Shown: positions 28,778 through 64,000, counted from the first letter of the stretch. The stretch: DNA of 64,000 nucleotides from Squalus acanthias (GCA_030390025.1 CM059429.1:145142001-145206000); one strand, 5' to 3'. Notes: generated by a model from the sequence alone, not told the origin. Made by a program: numbers and translations.

Positions 28778-30565
28778 GTGCGGAACCATCGTCATACAGA
28801 ACAGAACGGACTATTGCAAAGAAGCATACCGACAACTGGACAACCAGGAACACTACAGACAGCTACCCGCAGATCGACCAAAGAACACACCCGCCAACTC
28901 AATAGACTGATCAAGACCTTCGATCCAGACCTTCAAAACATCCTACGCGCTCTCATCCCACGTACTCCCCGCGTAGGAGACTTTTACTGCCTCCCAAAGA
29001 TACACAAAGCCAACACACCCGGACGTCCTATCGTATCAGGCAACGGAACCCTGTGTGAGAACCTCTCTGGGTACGTCGCGGGCATCCTGAAACCCATCGT
29101 ACAGGGAACCCCCAGCTTCTGTCGCGACACTACAGACTTCTTGCAGAAACTCAGCACCCATGGACCAGTTGAACCAGGAACACTCCTCGTCACAATGGAC
29201 GTATCGGCACTCTACACCAATATCCCCCACAATGACGGCATCGCTGCGACAGCCTCAGTACTCAACACCAACAACAGCCAATCTCCGGACGCCATCTTAC
29301 AACTCATCCGCTTCATCCTTGACCACAATGTCTTCACCTTCGACAACCATTTTTTCACCCAAACACACGGAACAGCCATGGGGACCAAATTCGCACCCCA
29401 ATACGCCAACATCTTCATGCACAAGTTCGAGCAAGACTTCTTCGCTGCACAGGACCTCCAACCAACGCTGTACACCAGATACATCGACGACATCTTCTTC
29501 CTTTGGACCCACGGCGAAGGATCACTGAAAGGACTACACGATAGCATCAACAGGTTCCATCCCACCATCAAACTCACCATGGACTACTCCTCAGAATCGG
29601 TTTCATTCTTGGACACACGAATCTCCATCAAAGACGGACGCCTCAGCACTTCACTCTACCGCAAGCCCACGGACAACCTCACGATGCTCCACTTCTCCAG
29701 CTTCCACCCTAACCACGTTAAAGAAGCCATCCCCTATGGACAAGCCCTGCGAATACACAGGATCTGCTCAGACGAGGAGGAACGCGATGGACACCTACGG
29801 ACACTGAAAGACGCTCTCGTAAGAACGGGATATGACGCTCGACTCGTCGATCGACAGTTCCGACGGGCCACAGCGAAAAACCGCATAGACCTCCTCAGAA
29901 GACGAACACAGGACACAACCAACAGAGTACCCTACGTCGTCCAGTACTTCCCCGGAGCGGAAAAACTACGCCATGTTCTTCGCAGCCTTCAACATGTCAT
30001 CGATGACGACGAACACCTTGCTAAGGCCATCCCCACGCCTCCACTACTCGCCTTCAAGCAGCCGCCTAACCTCAAAAGTACCATCGTTCGCAGCAGATTA
30101 CCCATCTTTCAGGAGAACAGCAACCAAGACACCACACAACCCTGCCACGGCAACCTCTGCAAGACATGCCAAATCATGGACACAGATACCATCATTACAC
30201 GTGAGGACACTACCCACCAGGTACACGGTACATACTCATGTGACTCGGCCAACGTTGTCTACCTGATACGTTGCAGTAAAGGATGCTCCAGAGCATGGTA
30301 CATCGGCGAGACCATGCAGACACTGAGACAACGTATGAACGGACACCGCGCAACAATCGCCAGGCAGGAGGGTTGCCTCCCAGTCGGGGAACAGTTCAGC
30401 AGCCAGGGGCATTCAGCCTCGGATCTGCGGGTAAGCGTTCTCCAAGGCGGCCTTCGAGATACACGACAGCGCAAAATCATAGAGCAGAAACTGATAGCCA
30501 AGTTCCGCACTCATGAGGATGGCCTCAATCGCGATATCGGGTTCATGTCACGATACAGAACGTGA
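28778..30565 (+). CDS. Penelope-like RT + GIY-YIG endonuclease ORF (N-terminally truncated)
   Basis: LPKIHK..PGRPIVS, TMDVSALYTNIP, GTAMG, RYIDD, CHGNLCKTC linker, NVVY.IRC...YIGET..LRQR...H. The first ~32 aa of the ORF-track protein are artefactual (inversion junction at 28786, 1-bp frameshift at ~28875). Confidence 0.9.
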   Translation: MRNHRHTEQNGLLQRSIPTTGQPGTLQTATRRSTKEHTRQLNRLIKTFDPDLQNILRALIPRTPRVGDFYCLPKIHKANTPGRPIVSGNGTLCENLSGYVAGILKPIVQGTPSFCRDTTDFLQKLSTHGPVEPGTLLVTMDVSALYTNIPHNDGIAATASVLNTNNSQSPDAILQLIRFILDHNVFTFDNHFFTQTHGTAMGTKFAPQYANIFMHKFEQDFFAAQDLQPTLYTRYIDDIFFLWTHGEGSLKGLHDSINRFHPTIKLTMDYSSESVSFLDTRISIKDGRLSTSLYRKPTDNLTMLHFSSFHPNHVKEAIPYGQALRIHRICSDEEERDGHLRTLKDALVRTGYDARLVDRQFRRATAKNRIDLLRRRTQDTTNRVPYVVQYFPGAEKLRHVLRSLQHVIDDDEHLAKAIPTPPLLAFKQPPNLKSTIVRSRLPIFQENSNQDTTQPCHGNLCKTCQIMDTDTIITREDTTHQVHGTYSCDSANVVYLIRCSKGCSRAWYIGETMQTLRQRMNGHRATIARQEGCLPVGEQFSSQGHSASDLRVSVLQGGLRDTRQRKIIEQKLIAKFRTHEDGLNRDIGFMSRYRT

Positions 30566-30807
30566 CTTGACATCATGGCCGGTCTTTCCAGGTGTTTTTT
30601 TTGGGTTTTTTTTTTTGGTTTTTTTTTTAAAAAGGCTAACACAAGAACACAAATTGACAGGATATGCAGCCAGCAGGTGGTTTGACACGTTGGACCCCCT
30701 GGGACACATCTCATTGTCTTGGCTGTGCTCTTTGTTGTAGCGAATAATGTGAATAGATTTTGTCTGGGTTTAAATTGTGAATTCTGGGAGATTCTCTCAT
30801 TGCTAAC

Positions 30808-30845
30808 TTACCTGACGAAGGAGCGACAGCTCCGAAAGCTTGTAA
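30808..30845 (+). ncRNA. Minimal type I hammerhead ribozyme motif
   Basis: TTAC-CTGACGA-A-GGAGC gaca GCTCC-GAAA-GCTT-GTAA: catalytic boxes CUGANGA and GAAA, stem II, stem I TTAC/GTAA, palindromic AAGCTT stem III. Confidence 0.8.
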
Positions 30846-31031
30846 AATTAAATAAATCTGTTGGACTATAACCTGGTGTTGTGCGACTTCTCATTTTTGT
30901 TTAAAAGAAGTATTTATTTAAACTTTTATGCCAGGAATTGGTGTAGAGCCATCTGTGTGTGTCTGCGCACTTTTATGATCACATGAATTAGCATTACAAT
31001 ACGAGGAGCTAACACCTAATTTGATGGTGGC

Positions 31032-31216
31032 CATGATGCGGAGATGCCGGTGTTGGACTGGGGTGGACAAAAGTGAGAAGTCGCACAACACCAGGTTATA
31101 GTCCAACAGCTTTATTTGACATCACAAGCTTTCGGAGCGCTGCTCCTTCGTCAGGTGCTCCTTCTTGTGATTTCAAATAAAGCTGTTGGACTATAACCTG
31201 GTGTTGTGCGACTTCT
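31032..31216. mobile_element. Minimal Penelope fold-back insertion
   Basis: Same CATGATG terminus as 28358, inverted arms, TSD CACCTAATTTGATGG (31013-31027, 31217-31231). Confidence 0.88.
31123..31157 (-). ncRNA. Minimal hammerhead ribozyme motif, sense to the receptor transcript
   Basis: Minus strand CAC-CTGACGA-A-GGAGC agc GCTCC-GAAA-GCTT-GTG, followed by AATAAA at 31116-31111. Confidence 0.75.
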
Positions 31217-31602
31217 CACCTAATTTGATGGCAGCTCAGGGTCTGTGCTGCCATTGGAACTCTGAGGGTCTCCTCTTTTACGATGACAGAACTGTTCATT
31301 TGCCATCAACAATATTCTTTCAAGGTAAAATTGCCTTAAGATGGCATTCCCACCAGGTGACTATTCATTCAGTGTCAAAGCATAAAACAGCTGTCTGATA
31401 ATAATTATTGAAGTAATAATTTGCTGACATCACCTGTAAGAATTTGTAAAACAGCACAAAATGTGTGAAGCGTTAAGCATTGGTTATGGTCCTACAAGGT
31501 GAGAAAGGTCAAATTTTCTCAAAGTGAAGTATAGGAGCTTTTGAACATTTCAAGTAATACGATAGACTGAGCAGACAGCCTTTAATTAAACAGATAGTCA
31601 GT

Positions 31603-31742
31603 TCATATATCATAAGGGTGCTGTTGGCCAAGCAGTGAGTATATGACATCATTATCATTGTTAGATTGCTCTCTCGCTGGGTCTCTCGCATTTTGTTCAC
31701 TTTCAGGCGTGGCTGTTCTCCTTGATAATAAAACCTTTTTTT
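31603..31742 (-). CDS. Terminal cytoplasmic exon (ITIM) of the VJ-C1 receptor
   Basis: Acceptor tttgttgcAG at 31744-31743. Phase-1 frame (not the ORF-track frame) reads KKKVLLSRRTATPESEQNARDPAREQSNNDNDVIYSLLGQQHPYDI*. VIYSLL fits (S/I/V/L)xYxx(I/V/L). Confidence 0.78.
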
Positions 31743-32061
31743 CTGCAACAAATCAAACAGGAAAATTCTTAGAGGAGTTCAGTAAACAAAACAACCCAAC
31801 CCATTGCTAACGACATGAAACTAGGTGGGGTTGTGAGTTGTGAGGAGGATGCAAAGAGGCTTCAAGGCAATTTAGACAAGTTGAGTGAATGGGCAAATAC
31901 ATGGCAGATGCAGTATAACGTGGATAAATGTGAAGTTATCCACTTTGGAAGGAAAAACAGAAATGGTGATAGATTGGGAAATCTTGATGTACAAAGGGAC
32001 CTGGGTGTCCATGTACACCAGGTCACTGAAAGCAAACATGCAGGTGCAGCAAGCAGTTAGG

Positions 32062-35000
32062 TTTAAACAGAGTGCTGCGAGTTGGGTGAGTCAGGGAGTT
32101 AGGTGAGGAGTGGAAGGAGGAGCTCCCTTGCTTCGCCTTTGTTTTTCCTAACTTTTCACCCTGTAGGAATTGGTTCTTACTTTACACCAAGGAAAGAGTC
32201 CGAGAGCGGGAGCAATCAAACAACAACAACTGCGAAACCGCTAAAGTGACGTCACAACCAGGGAAGGAGCTGATTGGTAAGTAGGACTTGGTGAGTATTT
32301 CTACAGTCCAGTCGTTAAAGTAAAAGTAAGGTCTCTAGTTTAGAGTAAGTAGTGTTTAAAGGGAAGTAAGGTCCCTAGTGTATTTAATATTCTTTAATTT
32401 AAAGGAAGTAAAGGGTGTAAATTAAGGGTAGGACATGGCAGGGCAGCTCAGCAGCATGGAGTGCTCCTCCTGTGCTATGTGGGGAATCAGGGACACTTTC
32501 GGTGTCCAGGGCGAACACATGTGCAAGAAGTGTCTCTAGCTACAGCTACTCGAAATCTGTGTTTCAGAGCTGGAGCTGCGGCTGGAGTCACTGTGGAGCA
32601 TCCGCAAAGCTGAGATCTTCGTGGATAGCACGTTTAACGAGGTGGTCACACCGCAGGTAAAGAGTGCACAGGCAGACAGAAAATGGGTGACCGCCAGACA
32701 GAGTAAAAGAACTAGGAAGGTAGTGCAGGAGTCCCCTGGGTCCATCTCCCTCTCCAACAGATTTTCCATTTTGGATACTGCTGGGGGAGATGGTTTCTCA
32801 GGGGAATGCAGCAAGAGCCAAGTCCGTGGCACAACGAGTGGCTTAGCTGCACAGGAGGGGAAGAAAAAGAGTGGGAGAGCAATAGTGATAGGGGGATTCT
32901 AACGTAAGGGGAACAGATAGACGTTTCTGTGGCCGCAGGCATGACTCCAGGATGGTATGTTGCCTCCCTGGTGCCAAGGTCAAGGATGTCACTGAACGGC
33001 TGCAGGGCATTCTGAAGGGGGAGGGCGAACAGTCAGAGGTCGTGGTTCACATTGGTACCAACGACATGGGTAGAAAGAGGGATGAGGTCCTGCAACAAGA
33101 ATTTAGGGAGCTAGGTAGCAGATTAAAAAGCAGGACCTCAAAGGTTGTAATCTCTGGATTACTGCCGGTGCCACATGCTAGTGAGTATAGGAATAGGAGG
33201 ATAGAACAGATGAATGCGTGGCTAAAGAGTTGGTGCAGGAGGGAGGGCTTTAGTTTCCTGGATCACTGGGTCTGCTTCTGGGGAAGGTGGGACCTGTACA
33301 AGTCGGACGGGTTGCACCTGAACTGGAACGGGACCAACATCCTTGTGGGGAGGTTTGCTAGTACTGTTGGGGGGGGGTTTAAACTAACTTGGCAGGGGGA
33401 TGGGATATGGAGTGGAGCTATAGTAGGGGGTGATGCACAGTCAAATATAGAGGAAAAAACAAGTCAGTCTGGAAGGCAGAGCAAATATGTAATGGCACAA
33501 GAGAGTATGGCAAGGCTGGATGGCATTTATTTTAATGCAAGGAGTCTTGCAAGTAAGGCAGATGAATTGAAGGTGTTGATGAACACATGGGAGTATGATA
33601 TTGTTGCTATCACAGAGACATGGTTGAGGGAGGGGCAGGACTGGCAGCTCAATATTCCGGGGTATAAAATCTTCAGGCGAGACAGAGGGGGGTGTAAAAG
33701 AGGAGGGGGTGTCGCAATATTAATCAAGGAGTCAATTACTGCTGTAAGGAGGGATGATATCTTTGCAGCTTCCTCTAATGAGGCCATATGGGTAGAACTT
33801 AAAAACAAAAAGGGGGCAAGCACTTTGCTGAGAGTGTACTATAGGCCCCCAAACAGTCAGGGGTTGATAGAGGAACAGATATGTAGGCAAATCTCAGAGA
33901 AGTGTAAAAATAATAGGGTAATAATAGTAGGGGATTTCAACTTCCCCAATATTAACTGGGATAGTCAGAATGTGAAAGGCTTAGAGGGTGCAGAATTCTT
34001 AAAGTGCATCCAGGAGAGCTTTTTGAGCCAGCATGTAGAAAGTCCTGCAAGAGAGGGGGTGGTACTGGACCTAATTCCAGGGAATGTAGCCGGGCAAGTG
34101 GTAGAAGTGTCAGTAGGAGAGCATTTTGGTGACAGTGACCATAATTCGGTGAGATTTAAGGTAGTCATGCAAAAGGACAAAGATGGACCGGAAATAAAGG
34201 TTTTAAATTGGGGGAAGGCCGATTTTAATATGATAAGGCAGGATCTTGCTAAAGTGGACTGGGATCAGCTACTTATAGGAAAATGCACATCAGAGCAGTG
34301 GGAGTCTTTCAGAAAGGAAATAAAGAGAGTACAACGCCAACATGTTCCCGTAAAGGTCAAGGGTGGGACCAACAAGCCCAGGGAACCCTGGATGTCAAGG
34401 GATATACAAGAATGGATTAGGAAAAAAAGGGAGGCTTTTGGCAGATACAAAGGACTAAAAACAATGGAAGCCCTAGAGGAGTATAGAAAGTGTGGGGGGG
34501 TACTTAAAAAAGAAATTAGGAGAGCGAAGAGGGGGCATGAAAAAACACTGGCGGGCAAAATAAAGGAAAATCCCAAGGTGTTTTATAAGTATATTAAGGG
34601 CAAGAGGATAACCAGGGAAAGAGTAGGGCCCATTCGGGACCAAAGTGGCAATCTGTGTGTAGAGCCGGAAGATGTGGGTGAGGTTTTAAATGAATATTTT
34701 GCATCTGTGTTCACTATGGAGAAGGACGATGTAGGCATAGAAATCAGGCAGGGGGATTGTGATATACTTGAACAAATTAGTATTGAGAGGGAGGAGGTAC
34801 TAACGGTTTTAGTGGGCTTAAAAGTGGATAAATCCCCAGGCCCAGACGAGATGTATCCCAGGCTGCTGTGTGAGGCAAGGGAGGAGATTGCAGGGGCTCT
34901 GACACAAATTTTCAGAACCTCTCTGGCCACAGGGGAGGTCATGATGCGGAGATGCCGGTGTTGGACTGGGGTGGACAAAATTGAGAGGTCGCACAGCACC

Positions 35001-36698
35001 AGGTTATAGTCCAACAGTTTTATTTGAAATCACAAGCTTTCAGAGCTTACTACTCCTTCGTCGGGTGAAGTAAAAAGATACAGAATCGCCAAAGCATATA
35101 TAGATAGAGAACAATGCATGTGTACCTTACAATTGCAGACAACTAAATTAAATCATCCTGACTACCTCGGCAGATAGTCAGGATGATTTAATTTAGTTGT
35201 CTGCAATTGTAAGGTACACATGCATTGTTCTCTATCTATATATGCTTTGGCGATTCTGTATCTTTTTACTTCACCCGACGAAGGAGTAGTAAGCTCTGAA
35301 AGCTTGTGATTTCAAATAAAACTGTTGGACTATAACCTGGTGTTGTGCGACCTCTCAATTTTGTCCACAGGGGAGGTGCCAGAGGACTGGAGAACAGCTA
35401 ACGTAGTACCATTATTCAAGAAGGGTAGTAGGGATAATCCAGGGAATTACAGGCCAGTGAGCCTAACATCAGTGGTTGGGAAATTATTGGAAAAAATTCT
35501 GAGGGACAGAATTAGTCTCCACTTGGAGAGGCAAGGATTAATCAAGGATAGTCAGCATGGCTTTGTCAGGGGGAGATCATGTCTAACCAATTTGATTGAA
35601 TTTTTCGGAAGTGGTGACTAGGTGTGTGGATGAGAGTAGTGCAGTTGATGTAGTCTACATGGACTTCAATAAGGCTTTTGACAAAGTCCCACATGGGAGA
35701 CTGGTCAAGAATATAAGAGCCCATGGGATCCAGGGCAATTTGGCACATTGGATCCAAAATTGGCTTAGTGGCAGGAGGCAGAGGGTGATGGTCGAAGGTT
35801 ATTTTTGTGACTGGAATCCTGTGTCCAGTGGTGTACTGCAGGGATCAGTGCTGGGTCCTTTGCTGTTTGTAGTGTACATTAATGATTTAGATATGAATGT
35901 AGGAGGTATGATCAGTAAGTTCGCAGATAACAAGGCAAGGGAATACAAAATGAATGGTAGGACCCTAGGAAGGACAGAGTATCAGTGGGACCTTGGTGTG
36001 CATGTACATAGATCCCTGAAGGCAGCAGGACAGGTAGATAAGGTGGTTAAAAAGGCATATGGGATACTTGCCTTCATTAGCCGAGGCATAGAATATAAGA
36101 GCAGGGAGGTTATGATGGAGCTGTACAGAACGCTAGTTAGGCCACAGCTGGAATACTGTGTGCAGTTCTGGTCACCACACTATAGGAAGATGTGATTGCA
36201 TTGGAGAGGGTGCAGAGGAGATTCACCAGGATGTTACCTGGGCTGGAGCGCTTCAGCTATGAAGAGAGACTGGACAGGCTGGGGTTGTTTTCCTTAGAGC
36301 AGAGAAGGCTGAGGGGGGACCTGATTGAGGTGTACAAAATTATGAGGGGCATAGATAAGGTAGATAGAAAGGAACTTTTCCCCTTAGTAGAGGGATCAGT
36401 AACCAGGGGGCATAGTTTCAAGGTAAGGGGCAGGAGGTTTAGAGGGGATTTGAGGGAAAACCTTTTCACCCAGAGGGTGGTTGGAATCTGGAATTCACTG
36501 CCTGAAAGGGTGGTAGAGGCAGGAACCCTCATAACATTCAAGAAGCATTTAGATGAGCACTTGAAATGCCATAGCATACAAGGCTATGGACCAAGTGCTG
36601 GAAAATGGGATTAGAATAGACAGGGCTTGATGGCTGGCACAGACACGATGGGCCGAAGGGCCTCTTTCTGTGCTGTATAATTCTATGACTCTGACTCT
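32062..36698 (+). mobile_element. Near-full-length CR1 LINE (ORF1 with Cys motifs + SGNH esterase; ORF2 APE + RT)
   Basis: ORF1 remnants CSSC..CKKC, VVVHIGTND, DGLHLN. ORF2 YFNARS, ITETW, GDFN.P, SDH, NYRPVSLTS, DF.KAFDKVPH, QGSVLGP. Internal deletion at ~35930, ttctatgactctgactct tail. Confidence 0.93.
34940..35364. mobile_element. Penelope fold-back insertion (near-perfect palindrome) with two hammerhead motifs
   Basis: Arms 34971-35164 / 35175-35368, 10-nt loop. TSD CCACAGGGGAGGT (34927-34939, 35365-35377). Motifs at ~35030-35068(-) and ~35271-35309(+) have the variant core CCGACGA. Confidence 0.9.
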
Positions 36699-39036
36699 AA
36701 GGCAAATGGTATGTTGGCCTTCATTGCAAGAGGATTTGAGTACAGGAGCAAGGATGTCTTACTACAGTTATACAGGGCCTTGGTGAGACCACACCTGGAG
36801 TACTGTGTGCAGTTTTGGTCTCCTTACCTAAGAAAGGATATAGTTGCTATAGAGGGAGTGCAACGAAGGTTCACCAGACTGATTCCTGGGATGGCAGGAC
36901 TGTCGTATGAGGAGAGATTGGGTCGACTAGGCCTGTATTCACTAGAGTTTAGAAGAATGAGAGCGGATCTCATTGAAACGTATAAAATTCTGACAGGGCT
37001 AGACAGACTGGATGCAGGGAGGATGTTTCCCCTGGCTGGGGGGTCTAGAACGAGGGGTCACAGTCTCAGGATACGGGAGAGGACATTTAGGACTGAGATG
37101 AGGAGAAATTTCTTCACTCAGAGGGTGGTGAACCTGTGGAATTCTCTACCACAGAAGGCTGTGGAGGCCAAGTCACTGAATATATTTAAGAAGGAGATAG
37201 ATACAGATTTCTCGACACAAAAGGCATCAAGGGATATGGGGAGAGAGCGGGAATATGGTATTGAGATAGAGGATCAGCCATGATCATATTGAATGGCGGA
37301 GCAGGCTCGAAGGGCTGAATGGCCTACTCCTGCTCCTATTATTCTATGTTTCTATGTTTCTAAAAGATGCAGCGGGCAAATAATGTCAACTGCAGTATGG
37401 AGAGTTTGTTTTAAAATGAAAGTTAGATCAATTCAATTGTGTAGTGTAGTGTAGTGTACAAACACAGCACTGAATAGCAAAAGAAGAAGAAAAACTGCAA
37501 TAACCAGAAATCTGAAACAAAAACATGAAATGCTGTAAATATGCAGTAAGACAATCAACATCTGTAAAGAGAAAAGACAGGTCATGATTTTTCTGGTGTG
37601 CACTCTTCACCAGAAGGGCAGACTGAAAGATAATGGGCATCTTAGTACGGTTAGAAAATTCAGAGGGAAAAAGAGAAAGAGGGAGAGAATCAATAAATCA
37701 CACAGGGGAAGTAAATAGGTTGAATGACCTGCAAACTGCTTAATAGAAAACTGTTAGAGGTGGTGACAAAACAGTCCAAGAAGGGAGTCAGAGATGGAGC
37801 ATGTAACAGTGAGGAATGAGGAATTGGAATCTTGGTAAATGAAATCCTTGAGAAAGAGAGAGAGAGAGCAGGAAGCAGCATCGTCAAAGTCATCAATGTA
37901 TTAGAGGAAGAGGTCAGGAAGGGTGCCTGAGTAGGAATGGGAACAAAGAATATATCCTACAAAAAGACAGGCCTAGCTGGGATTCATGTAGATTCCCATA
38001 ACAACACCTTTTATCTGGAGGAGGTGAGTGGTGTTAAAAGAAAAGAAAAAGCAAAAGTTGTAAATTCTGGAACTCTGAAAATGCTGGAACTCAGCAGGTG
38101 AGTCAGCATATATGGAGAGAAGAGACAAGTTAACAATTCAGGCGAAATCTGCTGAGTGTTTCCAGCACTTATTGGAATTAAAACAGAGGTTGCTCAAAGT
38201 GATAACAAGTTCAGCCAGGTACAGAGGGTGGTGGTGGACAGGGACTGGTTAGCCTATTTATCAAAGAGGAACTGGAGGGCTCAGAGACTATCTTAGTGAG
38301 GGATGTAGAGAGACTACATGTCTGTGGTGAAAAGTTGACCAAATAGAGATGCAAAGAACAGTGATCCCAGTTTGAATAATTGAGTATGCTGTCCATTAAT
38401 AAAAGGGTCTCCTACATATATCTGCCGCCTCACCCACCTCATTATGCACTGACTTAACTATGTCTGAGCCATATATCTGGGCCTTTTGGATAGTAGGAAC
38501 AATTAATGCCCTTTGAAGTGGCCTAGCAAGCCATTCAGTTGCCTTTAACATAGAAAAAATGCCCCAAGATGTTTCACAGAGACGTAAAGAAAAAATGAAT
38601 GCCGAGTCAAAGAAAGAGATATTAGGAGGGGTAATCAAAAACTTATTCAAAAAGGTGAGTTATAAGGAGGGTCTTAAAGGAGGAGACAAAGATGGAGAGG
38701 TGACGAGGGTTACAGAAGAGATTTCAAACTGTGGGACCTAGGCGGCTGAAGCCATGGCTGCCAATAGTGGGGCGAAGGGAGGGGAGATGCACAACAGGCC
38801 AGAATCAGAGGAAAGGAGAGTTCAGGGAGTGGAGGGGTTGTAGGGCTGGAGGAAGCTATAGAGATAGGGAAGAGCAATGCCATAAAGGGATTTAAGTGCA
38901 AGAGATGCTCTGGCTACGATCAGATAGATAAGAGTGGAACTAAGCGAGGGTAGTCCCACTGAGCTGGACAATGAAAGAGGATGGTGTGGTCGAAGACTTT
39001 GTCAAAGACTGCACAGAGATCGAAGAGGATAAGGAG

Positions 39037-39490
39037 AAAGAAAGACTTGCATTTGTATAGTGCTTTTCACGACCTCAGGATAGCCAAAAGCGCTTTACAG
39101 CCAATTAAATACTTTTCAAACGTTATAATGTGTGAAAAGCGGCAGCCAATTTGTACACAGCAAGCTCCCTCATACAGGAATGTGATAGTGACCAGATAAT
39201 CTGTGTTTTAGTAATATTGGTTGAGGGATAAATATTGGCCAGTACACTGGGGAGAACTCCTGTGCTCTTCTTCGAAAAAGTGCCGTGGGAGCTTTGATGT
39301 TCACCTGAGATGGCAGTCAGGGCCTCGGTTTAACGTCTCTTCCAAAAGACAGCACCTCCGACAGTGCCGCACTCTCTCAGTACTGCACTGTCATGTCAGC
39401 CTAGATTTTGTGCTCAAGTCTCTGGAGTGGGACTATGAACCCACAACCTTCAGACTCAGAAGCGAGAGTGTTAGCATTGAGCTACGACTG
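39037..39490 (-). mobile_element. Deu-domain tRNA SINE inserted in an L2 remnant
   Basis: Reverse complement of the 42127-42587 family. Confidence 0.8.
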
Positions 39491-40064
39491 ACACAGGAGG
39501 GACAATGCACCACAGTCACGGTCACAGAGAATATCATTTGTAGCTTTTGTTAGAGCCATTTCAATGCTATGTCAGGACGAAAATCTGATTGGAGAGATTC
39601 AAACTGGGTTGTGGGAAAGATGGTCACGGATTTGGGAGGCGACAACATGTTCAAGTACTTTGGCGAGGAAAGGGAAATTGGAGATGGGGTGATCATTTGC
39701 AAGGACAGAAGGGTAAATATTCAAATGTATATTCCAGTACTCCTTATCAGAGTCAGATATTTGAGTACCGACAATCCCAGAAAAATGCATTTGCAAATTA
39801 CAAATCAGTCCATAAATGGCTTATACAATCTTCAGTCTCTGCCAGCTCTGAAGAGCCAGTGAGTTCAGTTAGAAGAGTTCACAGCACTGGACTGTCTTAA
39901 TCAGACAACCTGTGCCATTAGACTTGTGTGTTCCACTTCATAGCATAAACCTTGGCTATACAACTCTGAGCGTAACATAAAACTCCAAATGTGCTTGCTA
40001 CAAGAGGTTTTCTTTTGGATTAAAAATAAAGTTACATTGAAATCTAGAAAACATGAGTACTTAC

Positions 40065-40169
40065 TTGAAATTGAACATGTACGAAGTACTGCAACTACCA
40101 GAAACACCATCAGCACAATTAGACTGCTAGCAGTTGATATTATCCACGATAGTTTATTACTGGCAGGAC
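40065..40169 (-). CDS. Transmembrane exon of the VJ-C1 receptor
   Basis: ttctcaacAG|...A|GTAAGT; 105 bp, phase 1-1. GPASNKLSWIISTASSLIVLMVFLVVAVLRTCSIS, no charged residue in the helix. Confidence 0.85.
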
Positions 40170-40334
40170 CTGTTGAGAATTATTGAGGCCATGCATTAAT
40201 AGCTGTGTGGGATTACATATCACAAAGCAGGACTTAAGACTTCAACCTTTTTTTTAAATTTAACTATTAAATAAGTTCACATGCCCACAACCATGAAGGT
40301 GATGTGATCAGTTTGACAAACATAATTTGTAAGG

Positions 40335-41970
40335 TTCCGATGCCCTCCGCCACTTTAACAGTTTCCAGTTTCCTGGCCCCAAACGTCTCCTTTTCACTAT
40401 GGACGCCCAATCCCTCTACACCTCCATCCCCCACCAGGACAGCCTGAGGGCCCTCCACTTCTTCCTTCAACAAAGGCCCAACCAGTCCCCATCCACCACC
40501 ACCCTCCTCCGCCTGGCTGAACTTGTTCTCACATTGAACAACTTCTACTTTGACTCCACTCACTTCCTCCAAATTAAAGGTGTTGCTCTGGGGACCCGCA
40601 TGGGCCCTAGCTATGCCGGCTTTTTTGTGGGATATGTGGAACAATCTTTGTTCCAGTCCTACTCAGTCCCCTCCCTCACCTCTTTTTCCAGTACATTGAT
40701 GACTGTATTGGTGCCGTTTCCTGCTCTTGCCCGGAACTAGAAAATTTCATACACTTTGCTTTCAATTTCCACCCTTCCCTCACCTTCACATAATCCATCT
40801 CCAACTCTTCCCTTCCTCAACTTCTCTGTCTCCATTTCTGGGGATAGGCTATCGACAAACTTCCACCAAAAGCCCACTGACTCCCACAGCTACCTGGACT
40901 GCACTTCCTCCCATACCGCTCCCTGTAAGGACTCTATTCCATTCTCCCAGTTTCTCCGTCTTCGCCACATCTGTTCTGACGATGCCACCTTCCATACCAG
41001 TACCTCCGATATGTCTTCCTTTCTCCTCAACTGAGGATTCCCCTCTACTGTGGTTGACATGACCCTCGACCGTGTCCGTTCTATTTCCCGCACTTCTACC
41101 CTCACCCCTTCCCCTCCCTCCCAGACCATGATAGGATTCCCTTGTCCTCACCTTTCACCCCACCAGCCTCCACATTCAATGGATCATCCACCGCCATTTC
41201 TGCCACGTCCAGCGTGATCCCACCACCAAACGCATCTTCCTTTTCCCCCCCCCCCCCTTCAGCATTCTGAAGGGACCGCTCCCTCCACGACACCCTGGTC
41301 CACTCCTCTATCACCACCAACACCCCCTCCCCTTCCCATGCAAGCGCAGGTGATGCAACACATGCCCTTTCACTTCCTCCTTTCCCACTGTCCAGGGCCC
41401 CAAACACTCCTTCCAGGTGAAACAGCGATTCACTTGTACTTCTTGCAATTTAGTATACTGTATTCACTGCTCACAATGCGGTCTCCTCTACACTGGGGAG
41501 ACTAAACGCAGATTGGGTGACCACTTTGCGGAACACCTCCGTTCAGTCCGATAGTGTGACCCCGGGCTTCCGGTTGCCTGTCACTTTAATTCTCAGTTCC
41601 ACTCCCACTCTGACCTCTCCATCCTCGGCCTCTTACACTTTTCCAATGAAGCTCAATGTAAGCTCAAGGAACAGCACCTCATCGTTCGATCAGGCACTTT
41701 ACAGCCTTCCGGACTCAACATCGAGTTCAACAATTTCAGACCATAACCTCGGCTCCCATGCTTTCTTTTCTCTCTCACATGGCAGCTGTTGATGATTCTG
41801 CCATTGCCATTTACAACTCATCTAGAGTCATCTTTTGTTTCTTAACTTGTCCCATTAACATCTCCTTTTGCCTTGCACCATCATCCCTTTTGTCTTTTAA
41901 TCTCTCCTGCCTTCCACCCTATCACAGACCTTTCCTTTTTGTTCTTTCCTCCTCTCCCCCCTTTCCCTGC
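40335..41970 (+). mobile_element. Decayed Penelope-like element (second family)
   Basis: MDAQSLYTSIPH...FLQIKGVALGTRMGPSYA, KPTDSHSYL, IPFSQFLRLR.IC; GIY-YIG remnant ~41445-41750. Confidence 0.85.
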
Positions 41971-42033
41971 CCGGTTTGGACGGTGCATGACCTTCTTTAT
42001 TGCTCTGCCGGTAGCGCCCCGCTCTCCGAGGTT

Positions 42034-42126
42034 AGCGCCCTAAGTTAGGAGTGTAGTGCTTGATTTAGCACTCCAGTTCTCTCTTGGAGCGCTAAATCAA
42101 GCGCTACACTCCTAACTTAGGGCGCT
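42034..42126. repeat. 42-bp-arm palindrome
   Basis: Arms 42034-42075 / 42085-42126, 2 mismatches, 9-nt loop. Confidence 0.9.
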
Positions 42127-42587
42127 GTGGCTCAGTTGGTAGCACACTCGCCTCTGAGTCAGGAGGTTCTGGGTTCATAGTCCCACTCCAGGGACTTGAG
42201 CGCATAAAGCTAGGATGACACTCCAGTGCAGTGCTGAGGGAGTGCTGCACTGTCGGAAATGCCGTCTTTTGGATGAGACATTAAACTGAGGCCCCGTCTG
42301 CCCTCTCAGGTAGACGTAAAAGATCCCATGGCACTATTTTGAAGAAGAGTAGGGGAGTTATCCCCGGTGTCCTGGGGCCAATATTTATCCCTCAACCAAC
42401 ATAACAAAAACAGATCATCTGGTCATTATCACATTGCTGTTTGTGGGAGCTTGCTGTGTGCAAATTGGTTGTCGTGTTTCCCACATTACAACAGTGACTC
42501 CACTTCAAAAAGTACTTAATTGACTGTAAAGCGCTTTGAGACGTCCGGTGGTCGTGAAAGGCGCTATATAAATGCAAGTCTTTCTTT
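42127..42587 (+). mobile_element. Full-length Deu-domain tRNA-derived SINE (SacSINE1-like)
   Basis: Pol III A box TGGCTCAGTTGG and B-box-like GGTTCA head, central gtaaaagatcccatggcactatt domain, L2-type tail ggcgctatataaatgcaagtctttc. Confidence 0.82.
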
Positions 42588-42589
42588 TT

Positions 42590-43060
42590 TCATCTCAGTC
42601 ATTAATATAGATTGTAAATAGCTGAGGCCCAAGCACTGATCCTTGCGGCACTCCACTAGTTACAGCCTGCCAATCGGAAAATGACCTGTTTATCCCTACT
42701 CTCTGTTTTCTGTCCGTTAACCAATCCTCTATCCATGCTAATATATTACCCCCAACCCATGAACCCTTATCTTGCGTAGAAACCTTTTACCTTATCGAAT
42801 GCCTTTTGGAAATCCAAATATACTACATCCACTGGTTCCCCTCTATCTACCTTGTTAGTTATATTCTCAAAAACTCTAATAAATTTGTTGAACACGGTTT
42901 GTTGACTCTGCCTAATCATATTATGATTTTCTAAGTGCCTTGTTACCACTTCCTTAATAATGGATTCCACCATTTTCCCAACGACTGACGTCAGGCTAAC
43001 TGGCCTGTTGTTTCCTGTTTTCTCTCCCCCTCCTTTCTTGAATAGCGGGGTTACATTTGC
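42590..43060 (-). mobile_element. CR1 RT fragment
   Basis: ORF 42767-42973 VDVVYLDFQKAFDKV. Confidence 0.75.
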
Positions 43061-43298
43061 AGGTCACAGGGAGCATGGGCTTTCCTATGCCAGCTGTGTA
43101 TTGTGGGAAGCATGAGCATGCCTGAATTGTAAAGTCTCAACTTTGCTTATGAAAATGTCTTCCAAACTAATCACGGCACCAGCGCAACATTCATACAGAT
43201 ATTTTATTCAAATCGTAAAAAGGCAATCATACAACTTAAACCACTTCAGGTCTGCAGAGTCCAAAGATTTGTATAACAAAAGGCACAGGCATTCTTAC

Positions 43299-43604
43299 CT
43301 TGGTTACGAACAGAAATCCGTTCAGTGATGGGTGCAGACAGTGTCGAGTGGTTCACCTGACAGGAATAATTTCCACTTTCATTCCACTCAAATCCAGAAA
43401 GATTCAGGAAACTTGTGATGGAGAATGAGCCGTCACTGTTGGAGTAAAGGGTCCCATTCTCAGTCCCATTGATGATTAACTGTCCATCTTTAAACCAGGA
43501 CACTTGAATGCTGCCAGGATAGAACTCCAGTGATGAGCAGACTAGCTGTACACCTTCATTAGGGTAAGGCAGAGTCTCTGCTCTTAACTGGACTGTTGGT
43601 TGAG
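43299..43604 (-). CDS. Ig C1-set exon of the VJ-C1 receptor
   Basis: ttttcAG|...G|GTAAGA; 306 bp, phase 1-1. AQPTVQL...VQLVCSSLEFYPGSIQVSWFKDG...NSDGSFSITSFL....W.....YSCQVNHSTL has the C1 motifs FYP, V.W, N.DG.F and CxVxH. Confidence 0.92.
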
Positions 43605-43699
43605 CTGAAAATCAATTGTAACATATTATTAGACCTCTACTGTTCAGGCTGCCTGTCATTTTGTATTGAATACTCCCAAGGGCTTGATCAGGACACACA

Positions 43700-44043
43700 G
43701 GGGACGATTTTCAACTGCCGACCATCTGTATCTCACCTAAAAAACAGGTGGCTAGCAATTGAAAATCAGGGAGGGGGGGCCTCTGAAGGGGCGAGCTGCC
43801 CACCTGTCTGAAACAGGCAAGAGGCACCTTAAACATGCAAATCGGGGTCCCTATGGCAGTTGTAGAACCCTGAGTGCAATTTTAAGGTACAATTGGACGG
43901 AGATTGCACTGTGAACACTCCTCCCAGTTATACCAGGCGTTGAGCAGCCTAATCAGTGGCACTTAAAGGGTGGGAGGTCAGGAAGAGCCGGAGTGCTCCG
44001 GCCTCACTTTGCACAGTTTGGGTGCTACTTGAAAATCGCCCCC
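43700..44043. mobile_element. MITE, intronic
   Basis: TIRs GGGGACGATTTTCAA / TTGAAAATCGCCCCC, TSD ACA. Confidence 0.75.
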
Positions 44044-44104
44044 ACACTCAACCTCCTGTACCAAATACATATACATTTTGTGACCGTAGTATTTTGCTTT
44101 TATA

Positions 44105-44687
44105 TTTTCTCTCTCCACAGATGCTGCCTGACCTGCTGAGTATTTCCAACATTTTCTGTTTTTATTTCAGATTTCCAGCATCCGCAGTATTTTGTTTTTG
44201 TGTTCACTGTTCCAATGAAGCTCAACGTAAACTCGAGGAACAGCACCTCACCTTTCGATTAGGCACTTCTGGACTCAACATCGAGTTCAACAATTTCAGC
44301 CCATAACCTCTACCCCAATCTTTTTTTTTCATTTTTTTTTCTCTCTCTCACATGGCAGCTGTTGATCATTCTACCAGTGCCATTTACACTTCATCTAGAG
44401 CCATCTTTTGTTTCTTAACTTGTTCCATTACCATCTCCTTTTGCCTTGCACCATCATCCCTTTTGTCTCTTAATCTCTCCTGCCTTCCATCCTATCACAG
44501 ACCTTCCCTTTTGTTCTTTCCTCCCCTCCTCCCTTTCCCTGCCCCTGCACTTGCTTAGAAACCTGTTCCATCTCCAGCTTTTTCCAGTTCTGATGAAGGG
44601 TCATCGACCTGAAACGTTAACTCTGTTTCTCTCTCTACAGATGCTGCCTGGCCTGCTGAGTATTTCCAGCATTTTCTGTTTTTATTT
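44105..44687 (+). mobile_element. Penelope-like 3' fragment with tandem terminal repeat
   Basis: EAQRKLEEQHL.FRLG...GLNIEFNNF C-terminus. ctctc..cagatgctgcctg unit occurs at both ends. Confidence 0.8.
44586..44622 (+). ncRNA. Minimal hammerhead ribozyme motif (second family)
   Basis: AGTT-CTGATGA-A-GGGTC atc GACCT-GAAA-CGTT-AACT. Confidence 0.78.
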
Positions 44688-45766
44688 AAGCTATTACTGT
44701 ATGGCTGTCCCTCAGTAGAGTGTGCTCGTTTACAACACCATGTCAAACACATTCTTTGTGAGTTGCTCCCAAAATGTTTCAGCTGTTTTCAACTTTTAAA
44801 AGATCAGCAAAAGTTCATGCAGTTGAGCAGTTAAATGGATTAATAATGCTAAAGAGAGCATTTTGCACATTGGGATGGAAATTTCTGTCTATTTGTCCCG
44901 GAAAAATACTGCAATCGAAGTGCAATACCCATTTCTGCTGTAAAAGATTGTTAAATTCAGACATAAGTAACTTACGCCCGTTCTTACACTACGGCCGAAC
45001 TTCCTCACTCTTTTATGCCCGTCTATTGATCCTTGCGCCCGAACGCATCTCAGCTCATTATAATGGCTCCACCCACAAGCTAAAGTGAGAGACGTGAATT
45101 TCTTGCAATTACACTGCTTCAAAATGGGTGTAGAATTAAGCCCAGAATTCTAAGTGCAGCAAGAAAGTCATTTTTCTCGTGCTTTATTGAGCAATTATTT
45201 TTATCCCCACTGAGACCAGCTCTGTATTTTTTGTTTCTTTGAATGCATTTTTATGGTATCTGTATAAGTCACATTAAGAATTGAACGCTTCTACGATTGC
45301 ATGTACTTAAACATGGCGTGTCTAATGTGAATGAATGATGGTTAGATGGCTTGAAACTTTAAACCTACTTAAAGAAGGAATATATGGTGTGAGTTTGACA
45401 CTTTTCTTGGATCCCGATTGTTTATGATGATTGACCCCCTTATCTCTGAAATTAACCTAGTGAATCGTCTCTGAACTGCCTCCAATGCAAGTATATCCTT
45501 CCTTAAATAAGGAGACCAAATCTGTACGCAGTACTTATGTGATCGGTGTCAAATTTTGTTTGAAAGAGCTCCTGTGAAGCGCCTTGGGACGTTTTACTAT
45601 GTTAAAGGCACTATATAAATGCAAGTTGTTGTTGTTATTATTATTTCCTAATTCTCTACTTTCTGTTCTGCAATATATTGAGAAATGCTGGTTGTGAAGT
45701 ATAAACTGTTCAAATCAGAGGAGTGATAAATACATGGTGCTTTTGAGTTGTAGATGTAAAACTCAC

Positions 45767-46129
45767 CTTCCACTGTTAGGTGCGTGCCTTTACCGACTGC
45801 TGTTTGTGTAGGGGGAGGTATTTCAATAGAAGCCTGACAGAAGTAAATGTCGGAGTCATTTACATGCAGATCGTAGAGTATTAAAGATGCGGAGTTTGTT
45901 GAGAGGTTCAGTGTAATGTTAGCACGTTCTGTACAACTCCCGATAGAAGTAAAATTAACTTTATTTTCCATATGTTGACACAACAGTAGTACATTGGTGT
46001 TTCTTGTCCATGTAATCCTCAACTGTTCTTCGTCTGTATAACTGTATGAACAGTTTATTTGTGCTTTGCCCCCCTTCAATACTCTGAGTTCTGATGGTGT
46101 CTGGGAGACAGTTAGATTTTTGCTTTTCC
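45767..46129 (-). CDS. Germline-joined VJ-type IgV exon, CD28/CD28H(TMIGD2)/NKp30-like
   Basis: ttttcttcAG|...G|GTGAGT; 363 bp, phase 1-1. LTVSQTP..INCSY..ITW..LC..SC..SLIL.DL.VNDSDIYFC..EIPPP...GKGTHLTVE. Confidence 0.92.
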
Positions 46130-46929
46130 CTGAAGAAAATATAGAAAGGATTAACAATATACAATCACCTATCAGCAATGAATATATTCTGTGCTGAATG
46201 TAAAGCTCCGTGAGGAGTTTGTAGTTCAGTGGGAATCAGGGGATTAATTGGGTCGGTAAAAAGACCAATCTGAATCTTTTCCTCTGAAAAGAAGTAAAAC
46301 TGTCCGGATACATTGATGGTTTAACACCTCGCAGCACCAATCTGTTAAATGAAATCTGTGCAAACCCATTTCTAAAATTGTAAAATTTAATAACCTCCTT
46401 TCTTCAAATCATTGCTTACTCCTGCGTAGTTTTTTTGATTTTTTTTTCTTGTTCTCAGCTCATTGTTTTGTGCCACATAATAGAGCCTGTCTTTCTTTGC
46501 GGTCTCTGCTGTCTTCCCTGTATCTGCTCTCTCCTTATCTATGTCTCCATACACTCGATATGATACGGAATAAAAATGGGCTTTGCTATAAGTGTCACTG
46601 GTAGACAATGTAAAAAAATACCTCCACATGTACAAAACTGGATGTAAAAGTGCAGATGGAGCAAAATATAGGATTTACCTTGACATATATTTGGTAAAAT
46701 TTTAACAATGCGTAGCTATATGATTCCATATATTTCACAAGTTCAAAAATCCCTCTCAGGAACAACTACTTGCACTTTTATACCATCGTTATAATGCAAT
46801 AAAACATCCCAAAGCACATCACAGAGACAAAAATAACCAGACGTTGAGCAGTGGTTGGAGGAGGATTAGGGCTGGTGACCAAGGCATGGCCAAAGAGGTC
46901 GGTTTTGAGGAGGCTACATGCACTAGACA

Positions 46930-46958
46930 AGAAATAAAGAAAGAGAGAAGGAAAGAGA

Positions 46959-46995
<37 letters not shown>

Positions 46996-47030
46996 GAAAG
47001 AATGAGTGAAAGAAAGAAAGAGAGAAAGAA
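46930..47030 (+). repeat. (GAAA)n / purine-rich microsatellite
   Basis: Direct reading of the tandem aaag run. Confidence 0.9.
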
Positions 47031-47260
47031 CTTGTAATTATATAGACATGAATACTATGGAAATTTTGGATACTTTTTTTAAGATTATTTGTGACTAATA
47101 CCTGTGGTAGAGCCCGTTTCTATGCAGTGATTTGTAAAGTTAAAGCACAGCATATTTCTGTTTGCCAGTAAGCCAAAACAACGCTTTTCTTTGTCTTCCT
47201 AATGCAATTAATAGTGACTGCAGTTACTCTGGTATGTTGTTAGACTTGAATTAGTCATAC

Positions 47261-47324
47261 CTGCAAATAGAAAGAAGTGAAGCAAAACACAAAGTCTGAT
47301 CACACGTGTTCCCAGAAGTATCAT
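47261..47324 (-). CDS. Signal-peptide exon of the VJ-C1 receptor
   Basis: ATG at 47324 gives MILLGTRVIRLCVLLHFFLFA+G|GTATGA (64 nt, phase 1). Exon acceptor ctatcttcAG at 47341-47340. Confidence 0.8.
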
Positions 47325-63600: not shown

Positions 63601-64000
63601 ATTTGTTCAGCATTGTGTCGAGTCATTTCTTTGAAGCATCTACACTGAAGATGTTTTTCCAGTCTAGTTTTAACTTTCTCAAGAGGGTTGACCTGTTGTT
63701 GTAGCTTGCTACAATAATAGGCCACTTTACTGACTGGCCATTGTGTTGAACTGTACATTCCATTTGTCCACATGTCTCTAGGATTTCTCTGGAGTAGGTT
63801 TTTAACTCTATGGTACTCTTTGTAAGTGGTACTTGATTAAACTTACTCTCATATGTGTCCTTGCTCATGATAGAGCAGTCTGCTGCCTTGTCGATACACA
63901 TATCAATATATTGGTCATTTTGTACGGAAGTCTTTCTCACGACTGCTAGCGTTGCCGCTCGTGGCATAGATAGTGTAGATGCCTAGTTCTTCAACATCAG
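60683..64000 (-). mobile_element. Decayed Ty3/Gypsy LTR retrotransposon (PR-RT-RH-IN), runs off the window
   Basis: VRLCGDYK, FSKLDLSHAY, LPYG, QDD (RT); YAQIEKEALA, TDHKPL (RNase H); H..HPG..C..C, VHVDF, VSDNGPQF, PYHPASNGAAER (IN). Polypurine tract AAGGGAAAGCAG then TG at 60764. Confidence 0.92.

Follow-up and report, generated by a model that had tools for sequence, protein, structure and literature searches.

An apparently unnamed V-C1 receptor family of cartilaginous fish and its probable ITIM-bearing member in Squalus acanthias

The locus considered here lies in a 64,000-nt stretch of Squalus acanthias DNA (GCA_030390025.1 CM059429.1:145142001-145206000; hereafter the window, with positions counted from its first letter). 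It raises the question of whether a receptor that joins a CD28-type V domain to a C1 domain and an inhibitory tail belongs to one of the described classes of immune receptors or represents a kind of its own. A sequence-only reading of the window claimed a five-exon gene on the minus strand, and this gene is present exactly as claimed. Verification of the frame exon by exon on that strand yielded a single open reading frame of 325 codons, the five exons adding up to 978 nt and all four junctions being GT-AG and phase 1. The exons and the motifs read from them are listed below, with a slash at the splice sites.

47324-47261, minus strand: exon 1, ATG, 21 leader codons and 1 base of a split codon; donor G/GTATGA
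46129-45767, minus strand: exon 2, 363 nt, V domain and J-like G strand; acceptor ttcttcAG/, donor G/GTGAGT
45810-45824, minus strand: FG-loop motif E-I-P-P-P, with Y-F-C-Q-A-S-I before it
45771-45794, minus strand: J-like strand G-K-G-T-H-L-T-V, with the GxG bulge motif
43604-43299, minus strand: exon 3, 306 nt, C1-set domain; acceptor ttttcAG/, donor G/GTAAGA
40169-40065, minus strand: exon 4, 105 nt, short stalk and transmembrane (TM) segment; acceptor caacAG/, donor A/GTAAGT
31742-31603, minus strand: exon 5, 140 nt, cytoplasmic tail; acceptor gttgcAG/; stop codon TGA at 31605-31603
31647-31630, minus strand: ITIM-type motif V-I-Y-S-L-L in exon 5, then G-Q

The V domain and the J-like strand share exon 2, as had been noted, and the gene is non-rearranging; the uncharged TM segment of exon 4 and the VIYSLL of exon 5 were likewise found. 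Exon 3 has the sequence LVCSSLEFYPGSIQVSW ... YSCQVNHSTLSAPI, and exon 4 encodes the uncharged, hydrophobic helix WIISTASSLIVLMVFLVVAVL, followed by RTCSIS. The stalk encoded by exon 4 lacks a membrane-proximal cysteine of the CD28/CTLA-4 type, so that covalent dimerization is not indicated. The remainder of the window contains only retroelements and one B7-like exon, and a tblastn search with the family proteins revealed no second C1 domain in the window.

Contigs of public runs from two studies were compared with a 6000-base stretch of the locus. A contig of run X3 (record 19) joins 45767 to 43604, and a contig of run X2 (record 9) joins 43299 to 40169, which are the exon 2-3 and exon 3-4 junctions, respectively, at the predicted bases. 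The latter contig covers positions 40167 to 40065, stops matching the genome right at 40065, and continues for another 52 letters, which fall outside the stretch compared, as do the junctions 47261/46129 and 40065/31742. Of the four proposed junctions, therefore, exons 2-3 and 3-4 are seen spliced in contigs, while 1-2 and 4-5 are supplied by colinear orthologues. In runs X1 to X3, which were taken to be RNA by guess and give their tissue as a code, coverage of the unique intron bins at 43650-44049 was 0 to 0.9; the DNA-like run X4 covers these bins at about 88 and contains exon-intron borders. The shark gene is real and spliced and specifies a cell-surface receptor, the function of which we infer.

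A phmmer search of 1.84 billion representatives with the V exon gave 132 matches at E<=1e-3, headed by V-C1-TM proteins from Pristis, Amblyraja, Pristiophorus, Stegostoma, Carcharodon, Hemitrygon, and Callorhinchus. With the protein P0001 as the query, 22 family members from 16 chondrichthyan species were recovered. The idea of a one-off gene thus has to be abandoned, as orthologues of about 320 residues span the cartilaginous fish (sharks, rays, and chimaera), with many automatic gene models and a cDNA record for the elephant shark. In an exon-wise BLASTP comparison with 156 proteins, the V exon showed 76% identity to P0144 and P0145 (7.6e-65), the C1 exon 85% identity to an orthologue (1.4e-59), the TM exon 76% identity to residues 245-278 of P0144 (2.6e-12), and the tail exon 73% identity to residues 280-324 of P0144 and 78% to P0145 (about 2.5e-17). 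The leader is 81% identical to residues 1-21 of Carcharodon P0147 (5.4e-07) and 76% identical to Pristiophorus P0144. P0144, P0145, and P0147 show all five exons in colinear order, and, judged by sequence comparison, this exon-by-exon match is far beyond chance. In the tree of V domains, the window gene falls within the elasmobranch type-A clade (SH-aLRT 94). More distant V-C1-TM proteins with the IPPP loop and the YSLL tail come from sturgeon, turtles, tuatara, and alligator; among the relatives recovered by the sequence searches, no mammalian V-C1 proteins were found.

The sequences of this family are already public, though misnamed. Automatic names of the orthologues include Ig light chain-like (kappa and lambda), SIRP-like, and tapasin-related, and such conflicting names for the orthologues of one gene can only be best-hit labels. 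The Ig light chain name was rejected: the V domain and the J-like strand are in one exon, and the gene goes on to encode a TM segment and a cytoplasmic tail in further exons. A full-text literature search, whose reach did not extend to the 2019 PRARP paper by Fu, returned no published description of a V-C1 ITIM family, and this conserved family is apparently unnamed.

The V domain is of the CD28 type, in agreement with the sequence-only reading. Pfam recognizes exon 2 as V-set (4.3e-14) and ICOS V-set_2 (5.1e-10), its PDB matches include CTLA-4, ICOS, and CD28 (E-values of 2e-05 to 1e-04), and its named single-V relatives in phmmer are TMIGD2 from three mammals (2.2e-07 to 2.9e-06), among the nearest, and a paddlefish CD28-like protein. 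The top solved-structure match is JAML, and TCR alpha scores equally with CTLA-4, ICOS, and CD28; since TMIGD2 is missing from the PDB set searched, this ranking is silent on kinship with CD28H. In the PDB matches, the J-like strand lines up with TCR alpha J and with GNGT in a CTLA-4-like chain. The Y-F-C-Q-A-S-I-E-I-P-P-P of exon 2 fits the motif YxC[E/K/Q/N]xxxEIP(PP), which Quiniou et al. in 2024 (PMC11599192) gave for CD28H, CD28HL1, and CD28HL2; the same paper also reports GxG in the G strand of CTLA-4 and chondrichthyan CD28-family members. Every one of the 16 family sequences in alignment A1 retains I-P-P-P but not all have the full E-I-P-P-P, which is replaced by Q-I-P-P-P in Callorhinchus and Hemitrygon B.

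Thus, three marks of the CD28 family are all present, namely, the FG-loop motif, the G-strand GxG, and a tyrosine motif in the tail. The fourth, a single extracellular Ig domain, is not: the run X3 contig has the V exon joined to the C1 exon, and the C1 domain is present in all full-length orthologues aligned. That classical CD28-family members have a single V domain, as had been assumed, is what PMC11599192 says, with the CD28H group included. The C1 domain itself proved genuine, with a Pfam C1-set match of 2e-18 (66.9 bits versus a cutoff of 21), and is of the antigen-receptor type by its structure matches, the best single-domain ones in the PDB being an Ig lambda-type constant domain (41.9 bits) and the C1 domain of UrIg2 (40.1 bits). 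Among solved structures, the family profile likewise matches UrIg2 (9dmx_A) best (1.9e-58), with one 95-bit stretch running across V and C1. We infer that the shark gene resembles the pre-RAG VJ-C1 ancestor of antigen receptors.

The consensus of ITIMs is (S/I/V/L)-x-Y-x-x-(I/V/L), and the V-I-Y-S-L-L of the window gene conforms to it. All 13 type-A sequences (the window gene and those from 12 species) retain Y-x-x-L with a G after it. At position -2, six of them have V, five have A, and T and G occur once each, so that only 6 fit the consensus there; the residue is A or T in rays and G in chimaera. Reptile relatives have T-x-Y-x-L-L. The claim of an ITIM therefore stands for the window gene, and its Y-x-x-L core for type A at large, but the strict ITIM is not a conserved feature. 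Given the off-consensus residue in rays and chimaera, recruitment of SHP phosphatases may not be the conserved function of these tails. An inhibitory role is suggested by their motifs.

The best explanation, which we regard as probable when taken as a whole, is that this region is an expressed, non-rearranging gene for a type I membrane receptor of the IgSF, and that this gene is type A, the member with an ITIM, of a small, conserved tandem family that is found in all cartilaginous-fish lineages sampled. A compatible but less likely reading makes the ITIM chain one half of a paired system, in which it would either form a C1 dimer with type B or share one ligand with it as an inhibitory/non-inhibitory pair of the sort known from other families of paired receptors. 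Type-B proteins have a V-C1 ectodomain of the same kind with another TM segment and another tail, from which the YSLL motif is absent, and are encoded on the same chromosomes as type A in Carcharodon, Scyliorhinus, Mustelus, Hemitrygon, and Pristiophorus; several of their gene models (P0003, P0004, P0005, and P0151) seem to be wrong, having long additional segments at the N or C terminus. V domains cluster by type and C1 domains by species, which implies that each genome keeps its C1 exons similar to one another; gene conversion could have this effect even if the chains do not pair. A C1 tree with type B held together was rejected (p-AU of 1.35e-05, log-likelihood lower by 271) in a test weakened by the naming of the A and B groups after the first C1 tree had been seen, and the case for pairing is drawn from genes throughout.

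PRARP are reportedly paired, non-rearranging VJ-C TM receptors of non-mammalian bony vertebrates, said to have been defined in chicken by Fu et al. in 2019 (J Immunol 202:1992) and to consist of VJ, one C domain, a TM segment, and a signaling tail, encoded by a tandem gene pair that is absent from mammals. The shark gene could be their cartilaginous-fish counterpart, in which case receptors of this kind would already be known and the novelty would be limited to their occurrence in sharks; we consider this rather unlikely. As so described, PRARP1/2 do resemble the shark gene as non-rearranging V(J)-C TM receptors with tandem genes and no mammalian members, and at the shark locus A and B paralogues lie in tandem on the same chromosomes, with relatives in sturgeon and reptiles but no mammalian ones among those recovered. 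PMC10751288 refers to PRARP as a VJ gene, and PMC11599192 groups it with VJ-type IgSF members, but the latter lists it apart from the CD28 family, all of whose members have one V domain, and its authors, being aware of PRARP, would probably have flagged a PRARP with an EIPPP loop as CD28 related. Further, PRARP is described as VJ-type, whereas the bony-vertebrate relatives P0076 and P0137 lack the GxG J motif, and the turtle protein P0076 as a query returned no bird protein in a search limited to proteins sharing 5-residue words.

It is very improbable that the gene is a shark SIRP orthologue, as several automatic names have it: P0147, P0142, P0151, P0017, and the reptile proteins are all [quoted passage not shown] at NCBI. 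SIRP-alpha does share with the shark receptor the combination of V and C1-set domains, a TM segment, and an inhibitory tyrosine-containing tail. However, it has two C1-set domains and four tail tyrosines, with ITIMs, versus a single C1 and one conserved tail tyrosine motif in the window gene and its orthologues, whose V domain bears the CD28H-group motif and which elsewhere carry the automatic names Ig kappa-like, Ig lambda-like, or tapasin-related. Although the PDB includes SIRP structures, no SIRP chain was among the best 60 of 1615 (V exon), 7944 (C1 exon), and 12056 (family profile) PDB matches. Least credible of all is a chance assembly of open reading frames or a dead gene copy. In its favor are introns crowded with retroelements and an intron 4 of 8.3 kb that no RNA bridged. 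Against it, the frame is intact, all four junctions have consensus splice sites at both ends, two studies supplied spliced contigs, and the order of all five exons is conserved across about 13 species.

A type A receptor of the preferred kind could be expected to work as follows. In CD28 and CTLA-4, the MYPPPY loop contacts the B7-type ligand, and the proline FG loop of the shark V domain may be presented to such a ligand in the same way. The C1 domain would hold V away from the membrane and would probably associate with a second C1 domain, of the same chain or of the type-B paralogue, as in antigen receptors. Phosphorylation of the single conserved tail tyrosine (V-I-Y-S-L-L-G-Q) would then recruit SH2 phosphatases and damp the cell. 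About 29 kb downstream of the receptor gene lies a B7-family gene, represented by the following feature.

2522-2944, same strand as the receptor gene: V-set exon of a B7-family gene, closest to CD276 (4.6e-21) and VTCN1 (1.5e-18)

The neighboring gene may be HHLA2 or B7-H3/H4-like, and its product would be the obvious candidate ligand of the receptor.

The V-C1 family may bear on the origin of the CD28 checkpoint receptors. With UrIg and UrIg2, described by Flajnik et al. in 2025 (PMC12227049), the shark receptor shares a non-rearranging VJ in a single exon followed by a C1-type domain, the profile match to 9dmx_A extending over both; a stretch H-x-T-L-S-x-P-I after the C1 F strand is common to the receptor and UrIg2. 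UrIg/UrIg2 membership calls for at least three C domains, with UrIg V and C as the closest kin, and the shark receptor has one C1 only. According to the same source, UrIg2 carries between nine and eleven C domains, shows expression mostly in gill and liver, and is confined to elasmobranchs, whereas the shark receptor has an ITIM-type tail, its family extends to chimaera and some bony vertebrates, and its CD28H-type FG loop is absent from the aligned UrIg2 V domain.

CD28H (TMIGD2), CD28HL1, and CD28HL2 resemble the shark receptor in being type I membrane proteins with a V-set domain that carries the EIPPP FG loop and the G-strand GxG and with a tyrosine motif in the tail. As described in PMC11599192, they differ from it in having a single V and no C1, which the shark gene adds as an exon after V, and the CD28H tail has Y-x-N-x in place of Y-S-L-L. 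The synteny blocks given there for the CD28 family are fsd1/stap2, man2b/kiaa0232/tbc1d14, slbp/tacc3/tmem129, and pudp/sts; CD28H adjoins the first of these and CD28HL1 and CD28HL2 other blocks, whereas the only neighbor seen for the shark gene is the B7-family gene. CTLA-4, CD28, and ICOS share with the shark receptor the proline-rich FG loop, and CTLA-4 also the G-strand GxG; the shark receptor differs from all three in having neither the stalk cysteine nor the YxxM tail and in carrying a C1 domain.

The minus-strand gene that spans 47324 to 31603 encodes a receptor in which a CD28H-signature V domain and an antigen-receptor-type C1 domain are joined; its family is conserved across chimaera, sharks, and rays and has relatives in sturgeon and reptiles. 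When the receptor model was checked and searched one exon at a time, the five minus-strand exons proposed by the sequence-only reading were upheld, with consensus borders, phase 1 at every junction, and an exon sum of 978 nt.

Exons of the receptor gene, as read from the sequence
47324-47261, minus strand: exon 1, ATG and leader, with the donor G/GTATGA
46129-45767, minus strand: exon 2, V domain, 363 nt
43604-43299, minus strand: exon 3, C1 domain, 306 nt
40169-40065, minus strand: exon 4, transmembrane (TM) segment, 105 nt
31742-31603, minus strand: exon 5, tail, 140 nt, with TGA at 31605-31603

A candidate poly(A) signal of the ATTAAA type lies at 31575-31600 on the minus strand, ∼25 bases past the stop codon, which would mean a very short 3' UTR.

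In a sequence search, the V exon was partly present in 9 of the 12 listed public sequencing runs, which come from 4 studies. Four runs (X1 to X4) were aligned over positions 40050-46049 only (6000 nt), a stretch that leaves the exon 1-2 and 4-5 junctions outside, so that these two rest on colinear orthologues. Spliced sequence was found at both of the inner junctions. A 323-nt contig from run X3 matches 45891-45767 with its letters 1-125 and 43604-43407 with its letters 126-323, exactly as expected for the predicted exon 2-3 junction 45767/43604. A 301-nt contig from run X2 consists of 43442-43297, then 40167-40065, and then 52 letters off the aligned stretch; given that the GT at its cut fits both sides, the junction is the predicted 43299/40169 between exons 3 and 4, and the contig stops matching the genome at 40065, precisely the donor predicted for exon 4. 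Coverage of the unique intron bins at 43650-44049 was 0 to 0.9 in X1-X3, compared to ∼88 in X4. Runs X1-X3 are presumed to be RNA, for which the spliced contigs are the evidence, whereas X4 is taken to be DNA of a related species because its contigs span exon-intron borders with ∼4-5% differences. A pseudogene is ruled out by the intact frame and the spliced contigs.

The receptor is a type I membrane protein that consists of a V domain, a C1 domain, an uncharged TM segment, and a 46-residue tail. This layout, claimed initially from the sequence, was borne out by the exon reading and by Pfam, which recognized V-set (4.3e-14) and ICOS-type V-set_2 (5.1e-10, over its cutoff) in exon 2 and C1-set (2e-18; 66.9 bits against a cutoff of 21) in exon 3; the TM and tail exons matched no Pfam family.

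The 3' part of the V exon reads Y-F-C-Q-A-S-I-E-I-P-P-P-T-Q-T-A-V-G-K-G-T-H-L-T-V. According to the survey by Quiniou et al. 2024 (PMC11599192), YxC[E/K/Q/N]xxxEIP, with PP added in chondrichthyans, is the signature of CD28H, CD28HL1, and CD28HL2, and GxG is a noted link to VJ-type domains. Among the 30 V-exon matches whose names were checked, the single-V relatives were TMIGD2 of three mammals, a CD28-like protein of paddlefish, amphibian and ray proteins carrying EIPPP or EVPPP, Xenopus NCR3, and caecilian CD7. The best matches of the V exon in PDB were JAML (2.6e-08), TCR alpha chain (1.8e-06), and the CTLA-4-like chain 4n8p (2.3e-06), followed by ICOS, CTLA-4, and CD28 at 2e-05 to 1e-04; the PDB set lacks TMIGD2, and therefore this ranking cannot place CD28H. 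Identity with CD28HL2, which the same survey describes as known in two sharks only and absent in rays and chimaera, is ruled out by the presence of the receptor family in sharks, rays, and chimaera.

For the C1 exon, the best single-domain matches in PDB were an Ig lambda-type constant domain (41.9 bits) and the UrIg2 C1 domain (40.1 bits). The family profile gave as its best PDB match the UrIg2 V-C1-C2-C3 structure (1.9e-58, with one 95-bit stretch over V and C1), with a lambda-type V-C protein as the runner-up (66 bits). Of the 16 candidates from a region-limited search with the C1 domain of the Heptranchias orthologue P0145, 8 were family members, and none represented another C1 family. In the Atlas model of the same protein (pTM 0.61), the nearest clusters were unnamed V-C1, tapasin-related, SIRP, and B7-like proteins. 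SIRPs have two C1 domains. Orthology to a SIRP, which the initial reading had named as an outcome that would overturn it, is very unlikely given the single C1 domain, the single tyrosine motif, and the lack of any SIRP among the best 60 PDB matches. An Ig light chain is ruled out, as the J part belongs to the V exon and the gene includes TM exons.

The relatives of this receptor are found under a variety of names. When the V exon was compared by phmmer with 1.84 billion representative sequences, 132 matches had E<=1e-3, 14 had <=1e-10, and 5 had <=1e-30; the top ones are proteins that are ∼300-430 residues long and contain V, C1, TM, and tail. Those from Pristis, Carcharodon, and Hemitrygon are named “immunoglobulin kappa light chain-like,” those from Amblyraja and Stegostoma “uncharacterized,” and that from Acipenser “SIRP-like,” while the Callorhinchus relative is “uncharacterized protein LOC103180135” in its RefSeq NP_ record and “Ig lambda-like chain, V-C region-nurse shark” in GenBank. 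With the family member P0001 as query, 22 members from 16 chondrichthyan species were listed, including those from Heptranchias (“tapasin-related protein-like”), Pristiophorus, Scyliorhinus, Mustelus, Heterodontus, Rhincodon, Leucoraja, Mobula, and Rhinoraja. Dozens of gene models in public records that go by “Ig light chain-like,” “SIRP-like,” or “tapasin-related” belong to this one family and are misnamed. The closest proteins to the window gene are P0144 from Pristiophorus and P0145 (V, 76%; C1, 84% and 76%, respectively; TM, 76% and 70%; tail, 73% and 78%), both colinear with its exons and with no extra residues between them. No Squalus acanthias protein was among the matches of these searches, and tblastn with family proteins detected a single copy within the 64-kb window.

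Chondrichthyan proteins fall into two types by their tails. Type A tails, including that of the window gene, end in (V/A/T/G)-I/V-Y-x-L/M-L-G-Q/P, whereas type B proteins have a different TM and tail without this motif; in several species, both types are encoded on one chromosome. The Chiloscyllium protein P0023, with Y-V-N-V in its tail, represents a third, more distant shark lineage. Proteins of ∼280-330 residues from bony vertebrates combine a V domain (with an I-P-P-P loop but no GxG), a C1 domain (with C-Q-V-N-H-S-T-L), and a TM segment, and appear to be distantly related to the shark family. They come from turtles, tuatara, and alligator (P0076 and P0168-P0177, with T-x-Y-x-L-L tails) and from the sturgeon Acipenser (P0017/P0137, whose models end differently), along with P0086, which ends in L-Y-S-K-L; every one with a name has been auto-named SIRP-like. 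Word-limited searches found no V-C1 member in mammals or birds.

The first V tree (44 rows with distant outgroups) was unresolved, with long branches, and was replaced by a family-only tree of 20 rows. There, the window sequence falls inside the elasmobranch type A clade (SH-aLRT 94), beside Pristiophorus A (85), with the type B rows on the opposite side. The C1 tree instead groups the A with the B copy of each species: Pristiophorus (97), Scyliorhinus (98), Mustelus (99), Carcharodon (91), and skates (100), with P0144/P0003, P0147/P0005, P0148/P0151, and P0150/P0153 among the A/B pairs concerned; the corresponding exon in the window is 43299-43604. The AU test on C1 rejected type B monophyly (p-AU, 1.35e-05), a result weakened by the fact that the A and B groups were named after the first C1 tree had been seen. 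Because C1 clusters by species and V by type, the simplest reading is that the C1 exon has probably undergone concerted evolution between the tandem paralogues.

The tail tyrosine and its +3 leucine are invariant in all 13 type A sequences. The residue at -2 is Val in 6 of them, Ala in 5, and Thr and Gly in one each, and only Val fits the ITIM consensus. The ITIM claimed for the window gene (V-I-Y-S-L-L) therefore stands for it and for most sharks, but the strict motif is not kept in rays and chimaera. CD28 and CTLA-4 bind their ligands through a proline FG loop. By analogy, the receptor might bind a putative B7-type ligand through its own proline loop, possibly pair through C1, and, as predicted from the motif, transmit an inhibitory signal via the tail tyrosine once phosphorylated. 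A B7-family exon is encoded on the same strand, ∼29 kb downstream of the last receptor exon.

Other features of the window
2522-2944, minus strand: B7-family IgV exon (Pfam V-set, 3.3e-12; best solved-structure matches CD276, 4.6e-21, and VTCN1, 1.5e-18)
28778-30565, plus strand: reverse-transcriptase ORF, downstream of the receptor gene
32952-36614, plus strand: LINE-type ORF with GDSL-esterase, endonuclease, and reverse-transcriptase parts, inside intron 4
61132-63967, minus strand: LTR-type RNase H and integrase, near the window's end

If this B7 gene encodes the ligand, the two would form a testable receptor-ligand pair. The receptor introns hold LINE-type and other retroelement ORFs. No Rfam family reached its gathering score in the whole window; at 30800-31800, Rfam detected no hammerhead with E<=1, and there were only subthreshold hairpin-type matches (∼31075-31217), where an inverted repeat produces mirror-image ORFs on both strands.

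Full-text literature searches, one of them with six accession or locus names, turned up no paper that describes a CD28H-type V fused to a C1. We consider it rather unlikely that the receptor family is the shark branch of a family already in the literature. PRARP (Fu et al. 2019) appears by name in PMC11599192 and by name and reference in PMC10751288. According to the former, each of the nine CD28-family members has only one V domain, and the origin of this family is unknown. The receptor family offers a concrete candidate for what connects co-receptors with the precursors of antigen receptors. Although we hold this doubtful, it may even have survived as an intermediate form that connects VJ-C1 genes of the antigen-receptor type (the UrIg/Ig/TCR stock) with the CD28 family. 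A VJ-C1-TM receptor that lost its C1 exon would then have given rise to the CD28H group, and perhaps to every CD28-type co-receptor. Sharks would still encode the ancestral form in a cluster of tandem genes next to one for a B7-family ligand; one chain would be inhibitory, its partner would have a different tail, and gene conversion would keep the C1 exons of the two similar.

Among published kinds, the CD28H group, UrIg/UrIg2, SIRP, and PRARP come closest. The receptor V domain shares the CD28H-group signature, but proteins of that group consist of a single V domain, to which the receptor adds C1. With UrIg2, the receptor family has in common the H-x-T-L-S-x-P-I motif after the F strand and, if the proposal made here for its C1 is correct, the concerted evolution reported for UrIg2 C domains. 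However, UrIg2 has at least nine C domains and a different expression pattern (PMC12227049, section 7), so that the likeness is one of resemblance, and the single C domain of the receptor rules out membership in UrIg/UrIg2.
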